A stretch of 64,000 bases of DNA from the NCBI GenBank assembly GCA_026770705.1, contig JANJGN010000071.1, forward strand, positions 1,922,001 to 1,986,000, in the 5' to 3' direction. A program made the translations under genes and the position numbers. The first letter of the stretch is position 1; each line of letters begins with the position of its first letter. This DNA is from Isurus oxyrinchus (lineage: Eukaryota). Of the stretch, positions 1,497-64,000 are shown piece by piece. The notes below the pieces were generated by a model. That model ran no database searches, was not told where the DNA came from, and was given only the letters and a program-made list of their open reading frames with translations.

Positions 1497-1635
1497 CTTC
1501 CTCATTTTGACTCACTGAGACACATCAGCTCTTTCTAATTAAATACACAGAGGGAGCAGCACAGGAAGAGGTCATTCAGCCCAAGCAGAGCGTGTGGGCA
1601 GTTCCTCCCCAGGCGAGCAGTCGGACAGGTCCTGG
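1497..1635 (+). promoter_or_regulatory. Gene A promoter and non-coding exon 1
   Basis: Block repeated at 35.7, 39.4 and 53.7 kb. Ets/PU.1-like CTTCCTCATTTT (1497-1508), TGACTCA (1508-1514), AT-rich TAATTAAA, donor CCTGG|GTAAGT at 1635/1636. TSS is inferred. Confidence 0.6.
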
Positions 1636-2067
1636 GTAAGTAACAGAACGATTGGAATTCACTTCCACGACCAACACCGTCCTTTGTTGATGTTGTGACT
1701 TTATAAAGACAGATTCCAATGATCGATGCCTTTGAAAGATTTCTACTGATTATTGAGATCTGGGTGTGAGGCTCAAGTCTGTTGTACAGAACATCTTTCT
1801 AGCTCAAGGGACATGAGCTTGGGGCATCCTGAGGTGGTGAAAGGTGCTATAGAAATGCAAGTCCTTCATTGTTTTTCTTTCTGAAAGCCTTGTAACTCTC
1901 TGCAGAACACCTATCATCCCACAGAGAATCAAATTAGTCTGTGAAGATATTGTCTAAAAGCAGTTCTGATCTCTCGAGAGCATTCAGACAAGAGGTGAAG
2001 TCTCATTAACTCCTTTCTCTTTCAGAACTTCAGAGTTAGATGCTGAGGAAATATCTGGGAGCAGACA

Positions 2068-2107
2068 ATGATCGGGAAATCTTACTTCCTCCTGTCACTT
2101 CTCCAAG
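2068..2107 (+). CDS. Gene A leader exon (MIGKSYFLLSLLQ, phase 1); exon starts at 2026
   Basis: Acceptor TCTCTTTCAG at 2025, ACAATG start, hydrophobic run, donor CAAG|GTAAG. Same peptide in genes B and C. Confidence 0.85.
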
Positions 2108-60300: not shown

Positions 60301-63300
60301 AATCACACCTTGGCCTGACCCCCACCCCCACCTCCTCTGACACTTCCTCCTCCTTTGAATATCTCACCGTGTTCCACCCCTCTCATCTCTCCTTCTAAAT
60401 TCTCGTTCTCTATCGCTGATCACTCCAGGAATGATAAACATCTTCGCCCCAGGATATCTTCACTGCTTTCCTCCCTCAGTCTCTGCACCGACTGAATTCC
60501 CATCCTCGGAGATCTCAATCTCCATCTCATCTCATCCCGCTCGGTTATTCCAACTCACTCCTGGCTGGTCTCGCACATTCCACCCTCTGTAAACTTGGGG
60601 TCATCTAAAACTCAGCTGCCCCTTTCTTAACCAGCAGTAACTCCCGTTCCCTTATCCCCCACTGTACTCTCTGACCTTGAATGGCTCCTGGTCAAGCAAT
60701 GTCTTGATTTCAAAATGCTTGTCCTTGCTTCCTCCCTATCTCTGTAATCTCCTCCTGTGCGACAGCCTTCCCAGATTTCTGCACTCCTCTACCTCTGGAC
60801 TCTTCAGCATCCCTGATTTCCATCGCTCCAGCATGGACGGCCAAGCCTTCAGTAGCCTGGGTCCTGAGACTTAAATCCTTTCATCTTTCTATCTCCTCCT
60901 TTAAGGTGCTCCTTAAAACCCACCTCTTCAACCAAAGTTCTGATTATCTGACCTAATATCTCCTTATATGGCGTGGGACCATACTTTCTATTATAATGCT
61001 CCTGTGGAGCACCTTGGCATGTTATATTACAATATAGGCACTATATAAATATAATCTATTGTTCTATGCTCCTCTAGACCATTTAGATTCTTACTTTCGA
61101 GTTAACATGCAACCTGGTAACCAGGTGATAGCTTCCAGTTCAGTTCGAAAGCAACCTCTAATACTCACTTTAATATCAATGATTAAATGTACTGAGTATG
61201 TCCATCAATGTTATCAGGTTATCCACTCCCATCGATCTCTCTAATCCTGTCTCGAAGTCTGACATATCGACAGAAGAATGATTCACATTTCTGTAGCACA
61301 TTTCACCACCTCAGCACGGACCAAATCACTTCACAGCCAATGAGCTGATTCCTGAATTGTAGTTACTGTTGTAATGTGGGAAACACAACAACCAATTTGC
61401 GCACAGCAAGCTCCCACAAATTGACAGGTAACAAATGACCTAGATCGCTGAGTGAATGATGGGGTAGTGCACTCCAAACTCTGGTCTGCTCCTCCACTCT
61501 CACCCACTATTATCACTTCAAGTTTCTCGGAGTGAACGTGTATTAAGCTGAGAGACAGAAACACCAAAGTCTCGAAGCAGTAAAGTCTCTCCTGATCGTT
61601 GTAACCTCTCAGATCTGATATCATCCTTGTAAAAGTGCTTTCTCTTGTGGGACTATTTGAACTGATGCTTCACGTTATATTTCTCTAAAAGGATCCATTC
61701 TCTGTGTGTTAGATTTCACAGATAAACCCACGATATTCCCTGCTGAAATTATTGCAGGGAAGTGTGTGGATGTAAGCTGCACCTTCAACACAACGTGCAA
61801 TGGAACAGCAGCACCTGTCTTAACCTGGGACACTCCCACTGACGTACCTGGATCAGTCTCAAACACTGTAACTCAGCATGGTGTCACTCTGACCTATACT
61901 TCTGTTCTGACCCTGATCCCATCACTCAAACACCACGGACACACTCTCAGCTGCAGAGTGAGATATCCATCTGTTTCATCGGAGCGGACCCTCGTACTAA
62001 CTGTGCAAGGTAAGTACGGACATCCTTCATTCCAGATTAGCTGGAATATTCTAGATTATGCATAGAAGGATCCCATAGAGAGGTATTGTGATGAGAAACA
62101 GATCATCTGTTTTTTCGGGAAAATAGTGACCAGCACAACATTAATAACAGTTTCTGAACAGTAACACAGCGGCTTTTATTTCCAGCCAAGAGACCGATAG
62201 AGCAGAGCAGGAATCACAATGTACTCACCCCCTGACAGTGCAGCACTCCCTCAGTACTGACCCTCTGACAGTGCAGCACTCCCTCAGCACTGACCCTCTG
62301 ACAGTGCAGCACTCCCTCAGTACTGACCCTCTGACAGTGCAGCACTCCCTCAGTACTGACCCTCTGACAGTGCAGCACTCCCTCAGTACTGACCCTCCGA
62401 CAGTGCAGCACTCCCTTAGTACTGATCATCCCACAGTGTAGCACTCCCTCTGTACAGACCCTCTGACAGTGCAGCACTCCCTCAGTACTCACCCTCCAAC
62501 AGTGCAGCACTGCCTCAGGACTGACCCTCCGACAGTGCAGCACTCCCTCTATACTGACCCTCCAACAGTGCAGCACTCCTTCAGAACTGAACATTTGACA
62601 GTGCAGCACTCCCTCAGTACTGACCCTCGGACAATGCAGCTCTCCCTCAATACTGACCCTCTGACAGTGCAGCACTCCCTCAGTACTGACCCTCTGACAG
62701 GTCAGCACTCACTCCTTACTGAACTGAAGTGTCTGCCTGAATTGAGTGCTTTGTGGTGAAGGAACCTACATTGATATCACGCCTTTCACATTCTCAGTGT
62801 CTCTCAAAGTGCTTCACAGTCAGTGTAAGTAACTGATCTTCATTTGTTTTCAGACACACCACAGAATCTCTCAATTACTTCTCTTGATATGATTAACGCT
62901 TCATGGATCAATATAATTGAGGGGAATTCTGCAGTGATAATCTGCTCTGTCGAGAGCTTCCCAGCTTCTAACCTGACGTGGCGACATCTTAATGTCCCAA
63001 TGAACAGAACAAGTTCCAACAATGAGCTGTGGTTGGTGATTCCTCATGTTACATCCAGGGACACTGGAGACTATCAGTGTGTGGCAGAGAATGAACATGG
63101 AGCAGTGGAGGGGTTCATAACCATCACTGTGGAATGTGAGTTACACAGACTTCAACATCTCTCTCAGATTTGAACACATATACACAAATGATCAACCACA
63201 TGCACACACAAACACTCACTGCACTGGAGTCCCGGTGTCAGCTCTGATTCTGTGCTGAAGGAAGGTAAACTCCAGATCAACAAGACCCTGAATTGGATGA

Positions 63301-63905
63301 GCAACCTCCTGAACAGAGAAATGTAGATTTACACCTCAGTGCTCCATTGGTCAAATACAATTCATTGCCTGCCCAGCCCTTGGTGAAATACTGAGGATGT
63401 GAATGGAAGGTTCTTTCATTCTAGATGGACAGCACCTCAATGGGTGGGAGAATGTAACTGCAGTGTGACAGTTTACATAGGCAGTATCCATTGTAAATGT
63501 GACAGAGGAACGTATGCTGAGGAAGGTGCCTGGAATTGCATTCAGACATCAGATACAGAGAGATGATGCATGGAGTCTTGCTGTGCACTGTGATTGCTCA
63601 CATTAAAATCTTTATGTTTTTAGATGCCCCACAGAATCTCTCAATTACTTCTCTTGATATGATTAATGCTTCATCGATCAATATAATTGAGGGGAATTCT
63701 GCAGTGATAATCTGCTCTGTCGAGAGCTTCCCAGCTTCTAACCTGACGTGGCGACATCTTAATGTCCCAATGAACAGAACAAGTTCCAACAATGAGCTGT
63801 GGTTGGTGATTCCTCATGTTACATCCAGGGACACTGGAGACTATCAGTGTGTGGCAGAGAATGAACATGGAGCAGTGGAGGGGGTCATAACCATCACTGT
63901 GGAAC
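54304..63905 (+). CDS. Gene C: Siglec-like receptor, 3' end outside the window (leader-V-C2-Ig-Ig...)
   Basis: Five intact, phase-compatible exons; no TM exon inside the window. Confidence 0.85.
55345..59005 (-). mobile_element. Paralogous copy of the same Gypsy remnant and nested LTRs in gene C
   Basis: Gag ORFs 56692-56907 and 56236-56556 with zinc knuckle CGRCG..CPA...CKACRRKGH; LTR starts at 57520. Confidence 0.78.
59631..59999 (+). CDS. Gene C V-set exon
   Basis: 369 nt, near-identical to gene B V exon, Arg kept. Confidence 0.9.
61713..62009 (+). CDS. Gene C C2-set exon
   Basis: 297 nt; R to C change gives an extra Cys (AGKCVDVSC). Confidence 0.9.
62222..62722 (+). repeat. 33-bp minisatellite, same intron position as 8836-9135
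   Basis: About 15 units. Confidence 0.9.
62854..63135 (+). CDS. Gene C Ig repeat exon 1
   Basis: 282 nt, intact. Confidence 0.9.
63624..63905 (+). CDS. Gene C Ig repeat exon 2
   Basis: 282 nt, intact, donor GAAC|GTGAGT. Confidence 0.9.
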
Positions 63906-64000
63906 GTGAGTTACACAGAATTGAACGTTCTCTTGTTATTAGCTCATGGGATGTGGGCATTGTTGACAAGACCAGAAATTATTGCGCATCTGTTACTGCC

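Follow-up and report, generated by a model that had tools for sequence, protein, structure and literature searches.

We analysed a 64,000-nucleotide (nt) stretch of the Isurus oxyrinchus genome (contig JANJGN010000071.1 of assembly GCA_026770705.1, positions 1,922,001 to 1,986,000; the window), which carries a cluster of genes for Siglec-like receptors. Positions below are counted from the first letter of the window. The DNA has 45% G+C, a CpG observed/expected ratio of 0.33 and nine assembly gaps filled with N. Three complete 5′ gene halves (genes A, B and C) and one 3′ fragment that lacks a 5′ half (the orphan) lie on the plus strand. All four are closely linked, within 64 kb and on one strand, and the window contains Siglec-like genes and repeats only. 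Exons were mapped by means of reading frames, splice sites and tblastn searches of related shark proteins against the window, and every predicted exon has AG/GT splice sites and compatible phases. Homology searches were run exon by exon, and the gene lengths given are summed exon lengths. The features are collected in Table 1.

The cluster combines a shared 5′ half with three different 3′ ends. A preliminary description of this DNA had proposed an uncharged transmembrane (TM) segment with an inhibitory and a switch motif of the immunoreceptor tyrosine-based type (ITIM and ITSM) in gene A, an arginine-bearing TM segment with a short, tyrosine-free tail in gene B, and a glycine-rich TM segment with three YxN motifs in the orphan. 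All three modules were found on the plus strand with valid splice sites, and by the exon maps of A and B one cluster contains both a gene of the ITIM/ITSM kind and one with an Arg-TM segment and a short tail, as had been claimed. The leader exons of A, B and C encode the identical protein MIGKSYFLLSLLQ; each consists of this segment plus 1 nt, ends in phase 1 and matches the N-termini of shark Siglec predictions, and the donor of the gene A leader reads GTAAGA. The exons for the V-set immunoglobulin (Ig) domains are 369 nt long each, those for the first C2-type domain (C2-1) 297 nt and those for the repeated C2-type domain (C2-2) 282 nt. In a self-comparison of the window, a 5′ block appeared in three copies of about 90% identity (1488-2873, 39386-40814 and 53712-55140). 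A recent duplication of 4.8 kb, 96% identical, relates 43849-48623 of gene B to 57271-62032 of gene C.

Table 1. Positions of the exons and related features of the Siglec-like cluster within the window (cyt, cytoplasmic exon)
Feature	Position	Strand	Remarks
5′ block of gene A	1488..2873	+	includes cyt1 of the orphan as an exact copy and, 433 nt further, the leader exon
Gene A leader exon	2068..2107	+	MIGKSYFLLSLLQ
Gene A V-set exon V1	5652..6020	+	phase 1-1, intact; V-set 4.8e-11, Ig_CD22 1.8e-8
Gene A V-set exon V2	7686..8054	+	93% identical to V1 in amino acids; FFRIE arginine kept; Siglec-5 E 1.2e-15
Gene A C2-1 exon	8426..8722	+	C2-set_2; nectin-4 domain 2, then MAG and CD33 domain 2
Gene A array of ten intact 282-nt C2-2 exons	9267..21262	+	Ig_3/I-set
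Gene A TM exon, uncharged	22080..22176	+	GLFTAGIMLSVFLAGIFIFICV; phase 1 to 2
Gene A cyt1	23055..23136	+	matches basking-shark model
Gene A last exon	24185..24433	+	LFYANI, TEYAQI, stop; 81% to basking-shark model
Orphan C2-2 remnant, 3′ part	33457..33522	+	intact donor; 5′ part replaced by a (GT)n run just after the gap at 33045-33186
Orphan Gly-rich TM exon	34784..34880	+	AGLLGAGICLSVGLSGFFIF; 77% DNA identity to gene A TM exon; 97% to white-shark model in amino acids
Orphan cyt1	35793..35877	+	GSSTGRGHSAQAERVGSSSPGEQSDRSW
Orphan cyt2, candidate cassette exon	36389..36493	+	VYENC; phase 0-0; CAG before, GTGAGT after
Orphan last exon	37151..37267	+	LYANC, 7 residues, VYGNL, stop
Gene B leader exon	39978..40017	+	MIGKSYFLLSLLQ
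Gene B V-set exon	46214..46582	+	FFFRIE arginine kept; BC-C′ segment unlike gene A; RNA depth peak
Gene B C2-1 exon	48304..48600	+	donor at 48600
Gene B C2-2 remnant	48924..49076	+	5′ half and usable acceptor lacking; bypassed by the RNA joint
Gene B terminal coding exon	50198..50337	+	Arg-bearing TM, tail, stop; RNA joint
Gene C leader exon	54304..54343	+	MIGKSYFLLSLLQ
Gene C V-set exon	59631..59999	+	95% identical to B in amino acids
Gene C C2-1 exon	61713..62009	+	
Gene C, two intact C2-2 exons	62854-63135 and 63624-63905	+	
Gene C, start of next intron	63906..64000	+	89/95 (94%) identical to the intron after the orphan remnant

The Siglec type of the genes, as named in the preliminary description, was supported by matches of the V exons to Siglec structures, by Pfam and by the matches of C2-1. 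Compared with solved structures, the V exon matched Siglec-5, -8, -7, CD33, MAG, Siglec-10 and sialoadhesin with E values of 1.2e-15 to 6.7e-12. Siglec-15 and CD22 scored lower, and MAG nearly equalled the CD33-related Siglecs. In the alignment to Siglec-5, CVQIPC falls on CVLVPC, DCSL on NCSL and YFFRIE on YFFRVE, and the essential arginine of strand F (YFFRxE), to which the carboxylate of sialic acid binds, is kept in both V exons of gene A and in those of B and C. Judged by sequence, the Siglec cysteine pattern, in which cysteines of strands B and E lie in one sheet and an additional one serves the disulfide between V and C2, can be read in the V exons (CVQIPC, DCSL) and in C2-1 (SCxxxxxC..GTxxPxxxW). 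Pfam gave V-set and Ig_CD22 above the cut-off in each of the four V exons, assigned C2-1 to C2-set_2 and C2-2 to Ig_3/I-set, and had no match in the three tail modules. The best match of C2-1 was domain 2 of nectin-4, followed by domain 2 of MAG and CD33. Genes A, B, C and the orphan are all Siglec-like. A HMMER search of 1.8 billion representatives returned 958 relatives. The top relatives that were looked up are RefSeq predictions of Scyliorhinus, Cetorhinus, Mustelus, Chiloscyllium, Carcharodon, Stegostoma and Hemiscyllium, followed by rays, skate and sawfish, under names such as “sialic acid-binding Ig-like lectin 8/10/11/12/13/14” or “CD33-like”. The nearest proteins that were looked up are all from elasmobranchs, which agrees with the cartilaginous-fish origin supposed in the preliminary description. 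Exon by exon, Carcharodon (white shark) and Cetorhinus (basking shark) were closest, with 87-94% amino acid identity. All three receptor forms, with their tail types, are already predicted in the automatic RefSeq annotation of many sharks and rays. Since all three tails are conserved in other elasmobranchs, the three-tail pattern is not due to chance.

Gene A consists of the leader, two V exons, C2-1, ten tandem C2-2 exons, the uncharged TM exon, a first cytoplasmic exon and the last exon. Its exons sum to 4323 nt in frame, which gives 1440 amino acids if every exon is used. In the last exon LFYANI fits the ITIM consensus [SIVL]xYxx[ILV] and TEYAQI the ITSM consensus TxYxx[VI]; the two lie 25 residues apart at the C-terminus. 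Six further genera of elasmobranchs (Cetorhinus, Carcharodon, Stegostoma, Hemiscyllium, Mustelus and Pristis) have this exon with both motifs kept. V1 and V2 are both intact and phase-compatible, and V2 carries an extra cysteine (PSCLEN). RefSeq models of other sharks have two or three V domains in tandem, and the double V head of gene A may therefore be real.

The C2-2 exons of gene A start at 9267, 10276, 11276, 12276, 13237, 14516, 18059, 19148, 20208 and 20981. Each is complete and open between its (T)nAG acceptor and its GTGAG donor, and the self-comparison shows a unit of roughly 1 kb in ten copies between 9.2 and 21.3 kb. All nine assembly gaps of the window are intronic or intergenic, and no reading frame crosses one. 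Five of them, at 9566, 10568, 11568, 13525 and 14807, start 6-17 nt past the intact GTGAG donor of a complete C2-2 exon, and a sixth (13756-13948) lies 11 nt beyond the gap at 13525 in the same intron. Because the gaps of the array start just after an intact donor, they lie in introns. The ungapped unit at 12558-13236 holds a CA-rich microsatellite in its intron, a plausible cause of the array gaps. The number of gaps, together with the spacing of exactly 1000 bp between the copies at 10276, 11276 and 12276 and their equal gaps of 141 N, might suggest that the ten-copy array, as well as the headless orphan, arose in part from mis-joined or mis-sized short-read scaffolds. We regard such a partial artefact as doubtful. 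Ungapped DNA contains four successive C2-2 copies at 18059-21262 and two at 12276-13518. The copies are 88-98% identical, that is, they differ by 2-12%, and are distinct sequences since they are not 100% identical. Other sharks with chromosome-level assemblies also have predicted long multi-C2 proteins, among them a zebra-shark model of 1463 amino acids with at least eight C2-2 domains, and neither gene B nor the three tail types hinge on a gap. For the array itself, copy number and order across the gaps are provisional in this assembly.

Within the array, an intron of 3.3 kb contains an open reading frame (ORF) in which Pfam recognises a GIY-YIG nuclease domain (16653-16979, E 1.5e-5), flanked by inverted repeats at 15372-16247 and 16637-17485; the element at 15372-17485 looks like a Penelope-like retroelement. 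Downstream of gene A, a reverse-transcriptase fragment was found at 25639-26058 (RVT_1, E 6e-6, below the Pfam cut-off).

Gene B consists of the leader, V, C2-1, a C2-2 remnant and a terminal Arg-TM exon. Its coding exons sum to 846 nt and 281 amino acids, and the frame is intact from leader to stop. The terminal exon encodes VILILGIRAVIFLV and ends with the 13-residue tail WERQTVKGSRQTV, which contains no tyrosine; the TM stretch with the arginine reads VILILGIRAVIFLVAVVITIAGVCVW, followed by ERQTVKGSRQTV and the stop. In a direct comparison, no DNA similarity was found between this exon and the TM exon of gene A. The Arg-TM module is 80% identical over 45 amino acids in S. torazame XP_072326180 and also occurs in C. 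punctatum XP_072409577, with an invariant arginine in both. A region search with the module, limited by its length and by word size, returned only two S. torazame proteins. A cryptic acceptor that might rescue the half C2-2 exon of gene B was considered and rejected, as it is phase-incompatible and the exon is skipped by the RNA joint.

Transcription was assessed for the gene B region (45001-51000) with Logan contigs from four public runs, which represent three samples, three studies and two organisms. A transcript joining the V/C2 exons to the Arg-TM exon, on which the preliminary description had staked its reading, was recovered: a GT..AG joint from 48600 to 50198 is present in one contig of each of the four runs (reported as 48598 to 50196, the cut being shifted by +2). 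These positions are exactly the predicted C2-1 donor and Arg-TM acceptor. Contig depth rises to peaks over the gene B exons for V, C2-1 and TM, and the contigs run past the stop to at least 50532 in the 3′ untranslated region, as expected for a terminal exon. A loose contig end before 48303 corresponds to the last 11 nt of the V exon. Another before 48924 corresponds to intact C2-2 sequence from paralogues and marks the break in the gene B remnant. Contigs of two runs replace about 67-70 nt at 46310-46381 (joints from 46310 to 46378/46381), the BC-C′ segment that differs between A and B. Paralogue transcripts with other BC-C′ versions are therefore present in those two runs.

The orphan comprises a C2-2 remnant, the Gly-rich TM exon, a first cytoplasmic exon, a candidate cassette exon and the last exon. 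Its coding exons add up to 404 nt plus 1 carried over, in frame. The tail is unrelated to that of gene A and bears three YxN motifs (YEN, YAN and YGN). A stretch related to the cassette exon at 36389-36493 is present in a bamboo-shark model and skipped in a white-shark model. The terminal arrangement of Y-x-N, 6-7 residues and Y-x-N-[LIVM] is kept in eight other aligned proteins, five of them named (sharks, rays, skate, manta). The white-shark “CD33-like” protein XP_041037180 combines leader, V and C2 with an orphan-type TM segment and an orphan-type tail, and its accession directly follows those of the white-shark ITIM-type gene on the same contig.

Gene C, the tail of which had been called probably of the YxN type, is cut by the end of the window, so that its tail lies outside. 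The last intron within the window (63906-64000) matches the intron after the orphan remnant, versus about 50% identity, the chance level, to the corresponding introns of A and B. Because this intron is 94% identical to that of the orphan, the predicted gene C very probably ends in a YxN module. The orphan in turn is best read as the putative 3′ half of a C-like gene. An arrangement in which the orphan TM and YxN exons serve as an alternative 3′ end of gene A, so that splicing and polyadenylation of one gene would yield an ITIM or a YxN output, appears to us quite improbable. In its favour, all orphan exons are intact, the phase of the orphan TM acceptor fits any C2-2 donor, and no leader or V exon lies between the stop of gene A (24433) and the orphan. 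In the white shark, however, two separate genes are predicted for the ITIM form and the Gly-TM/YxN form, and their accessions follow one another on a single contig. The orphan also keeps its own C2-2 remnant, and its likeness to the gene C intron is the mark of the 3′ half of a C-like gene. Moreover, three gaps (30749-31017, 32502-32640 and 33045-33186) lie between the stop of gene A and the orphan, just upstream of the latter, and its 5′ half may be absent from the assembly.

Several repeats and rejected candidates were noted in and around these genes. An exact 85-nt copy of the first cytoplasmic exon of the orphan, with acceptor and GTAAGT donor kept, lies at 1551-1635, 433 nt upstream of the gene A leader, and B and C have near copies upstream of their leaders (39447-39527 and 53773-53853). 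The duplication unit of the family seems to begin inside a YxN-type tail. A 24-bp tandem array of 18 copies (36623-37052) sits just upstream of the last orphan exon, and a 43-bp array of 16 copies (38605-39276) downstream of it. A 33-bp minisatellite occurs at five sites, one of them on the opposite strand (8839-9134, 23349-23718, 31199-31984, 51771-53495 and 62221-62722); it lies in the intron between C2-1 and C2-2 in A and C, extends over 1.7 kb after gene B, and yields long spurious ORFs on both strands. The sequence VKYSEL at the end of a short ORF (2642-2704, 40582-40644 and 54907-54969) was considered as an ITIM exon and rejected: it belongs to the shared 5′ block downstream of the leader, has no homologue among the tblastn-mapped shark proteins and has no splice support. 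A conserved stretch of 200 bp just 5′ of the V exons (5433-5650 and 45995-46213) was likewise dismissed as a leader. It is also found inverted at 25204-25572 and carries a reverse-strand ORF, and the true leader lies 3.5-6.2 kb upstream.

The ectodomains are alike to different degrees. B and C share 95% of the V and 98% of the C2-1 residues. A and B share 72% of the V and 96% of the C2-1 residues, and at the nucleotide level their C2-1 exons are 98.3% identical compared with 76% for the intron between V and C2-1. The description of these exons as closely related therefore holds for the leader, C2-1 (96-98% of amino acids) and the 3′ half of V, but the complete V domain of A is only 72-74% identical to those of B and C. 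Within V, codons 28-55 of A and B, from the BC loop to C′, have 8 of 28 residues in common, with proportions of synonymous and nonsynonymous differences (pS and pN) of 0.68 and 0.49. Over codons 56-122, 59 of 67 residues are identical (pS 0.02, pN 0.06). Ka/Ks of the V exons, the ratio of nonsynonymous to synonymous rates, is 0.5-0.95. We read the A/B mosaic as probable gene conversion around a retained, old and divergent BC-C′ specificity segment. This divergence points to a putative difference in fine specificity between A and B. The inhibitory/activating pair that the preliminary description had drawn by analogy stands as far as the linkage of an ITIM gene and an Arg-TM gene is concerned. 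Because only 8 of 28 residues agree in BC-C′, A and B would not form a strict same-ligand pair like Siglec-5/14; the prediction is a linked and partly homogenised couple, in which the twin of B is C.

Taken together, our data probably reflect a tandem, lineage-specific shark cluster of Siglec-like receptors with exchangeable modules, in which a shared 5′ half continues into one or another of three 3′ ends. Exon structure, homology, conservation and the gene B splice supply the observed framework of this explanation. Several points weigh against it. For A, B and C, both glycan binding and signalling of every kind are deduced from the sequence. In BC-C′, the segment by which Siglec specificity is set, A and B have strongly different heads. 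RNA support covers gene B alone among A, the orphan, B and C, and it consists of assembled contigs rather than raw reads. The sides of the joint are short (29, 27, 30 and 56 nt), with only one run above the 31-nt threshold, and at 92% likeness the contigs could stem from a paralogue or a sister species and not from this locus. The run type “RNA” was itself deduced from the exon-peaked depth. A survey of 2014 reported no FcR-gamma homologue in sharks (PMC4016189), and the same survey found no LRC-type (leukocyte receptor complex) receptors there (PMC4016189). Finally, the loss in the C2-2 exon of gene B could be read as decay.

This last point leads to a birth-and-death family without a functional pair, made up of recent duplicates that diverge by drift, in which B would be a truncated, decaying copy, non-signalling or a decoy by virtue of its charged TM segment and short tail, and A and B would see different ligands. 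The missing 5′ half of the C2-2 exon in B, the few BC-C′ residues shared by A and B, the presence of an orphan fragment in the cluster and the Ka/Ks values, which indicate relaxed or diversifying evolution, are in line with this. On the other hand, the Arg-TM exon is 80% conserved, with its invariant arginine, in two further named shark genera, four runs show it spliced and with good coverage, and the frame of gene B is intact throughout. We therefore consider a family of this kind unlikely and favour the cluster of exchangeable receptor modules.

To place the V domains, a tree of 92 rows and 123 columns was computed with IQ-TREE in quick mode with a CD22-like outgroup; the groups were drawn from a first FastTree, and some of the rows are named. 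The elasmobranch V rows form one group, with a Shimodaira-Hasegawa-like approximate likelihood ratio test (SH-aLRT) value of 93, and a subset of 22 shark rows reaches 97. The CD33-related-like V rows of tetrapods form a separate group (97), of which the named members are from elephant shrew, Xenopus, turtle and frog. With 123 columns the deeper forks are weak, and membership of the elasmobranch V domains among the CD33-related Siglecs is thus weakly placed. Since the V domains of elasmobranchs make up a clade separate from the tetrapod group, the pairing would have an independent origin. The absence of DNA similarity between the Arg-TM exon and the TM exon of gene A agrees with the independent evolution that had been proposed as a possibility. 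These findings support rather than prove a lineage-specific expansion of elasmobranch Siglec-like genes and a pairing independent of the primate pairs. Proteins of bowfin and eel named Siglec-14 and Siglec-5 fall near this group, which sits poorly with the statement of a widely cited survey, based on teleosts, that fish lack CD33-related Siglecs (PMC7226832). In the searchable literature we found no paper on shark or chondrichthyan Siglec pairs and one passing mention of Siglecs, in the whale-shark genome paper (PMC8455134). A statement that the system is undescribed would accordingly hold for the papers searched, but not for the automatic RefSeq annotation, which predicts all three forms.

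As to mechanism, the genes would have arisen by unequal duplication, and exchange between the copies would still continue. The product of gene A would have a very long stalk, made of two V domains and as many as eleven C2 domains, and its tail, when phosphorylated, might recruit phosphatases of the SHP-1/SHP-2 type and damp cell activation. The short V-C2 receptor of gene B would signal only via an adaptor with an acidic TM segment and an immunoreceptor tyrosine-based activation motif (ITAM), of the DAP12, FcR-gamma or CD3-zeta type. For the orphan and, presumably, gene C, the YxN tail would most likely dock SH2 adaptors of the Grb2 family. The last two YxN motifs of the orphan are spaced like an ITAM (Y-x-N-C, 7 residues, Y-x-N-L). 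On this basis we put forward, tentatively, that elasmobranch Siglec clusters are triads, with a third putative signalling class that bears an ITAM-spaced double Grb2-type or Ig-tail-tyrosine (ITT)-like motif on the receptor itself. The tail meant here is the conserved C-terminal arrangement of Y-x-N-[CWF], 6-7 residues and Y-x-N-[LIVM]. If the proposal holds, the matched heads of B and C (95%) would couple one ligand to both the Arg-TM adaptor route and a direct route, and the ITIM gene would differ from them in its retained specificity loop and in a stalk ten times as long.

The cluster is real, and part of it at least is transcribed. It is Siglec-like, its three types of tail are conserved, and it is a shark parallel to the mammalian paired Siglecs. 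Paired Siglecs have been described in mammals as a host answer to sialic-acid-mimicking pathogens. A transcribed shark cluster with ITIM, conserved Arg-TM and YxN forms would mean that this design evolved a separate time in the most ancient surviving lineage of jawed vertebrates. It also supplies concrete constructs for finding the adaptor of a shark charged-TM receptor, in animals from which FcR-gamma is reported absent. Its weight is limited by the fact that such proteins are already in automatic annotation and that function is judged from sequence.

Among known systems, the human pairs Siglec-5/Siglec-14 and Siglec-11/Siglec-16 are closest. They are likewise linked, one member with a tail of ITIM and ITIM-like/ITSM type and the other with a basic TM segment and a short tail. 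The basic-TM member needs an ITAM adaptor, and gene B may be likened to Siglec-14/15/16 in this respect. Ectodomain exons are homogenised by gene conversion in the human pairs and, on our reading, in the shark cluster. Primate Siglec pairs have near-identical V domains, whereas the shark ITIM and Arg-TM genes share 72% of their V residues. The shark V clade is also separate from the tetrapod CD33-related-like clade, and the cluster goes beyond the human pairs in its third tail class and in an ITIM gene that has two V exons and as many as ten C2 exons in repeat. CD33-related Siglecs resemble gene A in having a membrane-proximal ITIM and a C-terminal TEYxxI in the same order and with similar spacing, and they resemble the shark genes in the exon plan of V followed by C2 with phase-1 boundaries. 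However, the shark genes form their own V-tree group and MAG scores nearly as well; the likeness is one of tail design. YxN is the consensus for binding by SH2 domains of the Grb2 family, and a tail tyrosine with asparagine at +2 is shared by the orphan with CD22, with the YxN sites of Siglec-10/G and with the tail tyrosine of IgG/IgE (YxNM). Unlike in CD22 and Siglec-10/G, the YxN motifs of the orphan are its sole tyrosine motifs, two of them stand at the extreme C-terminus with ITAM-like spacing, and no ITIM lies beside them. Finally, KIR, LILR, PILR alpha/beta, SIRP and the teleost NITR/LITR families resemble the shark cluster in their tandem arrangement, similar ectodomains, ITIM or charged-TM short-tail forms and birth and death, but they belong to different Ig families and have non-Siglec heads.

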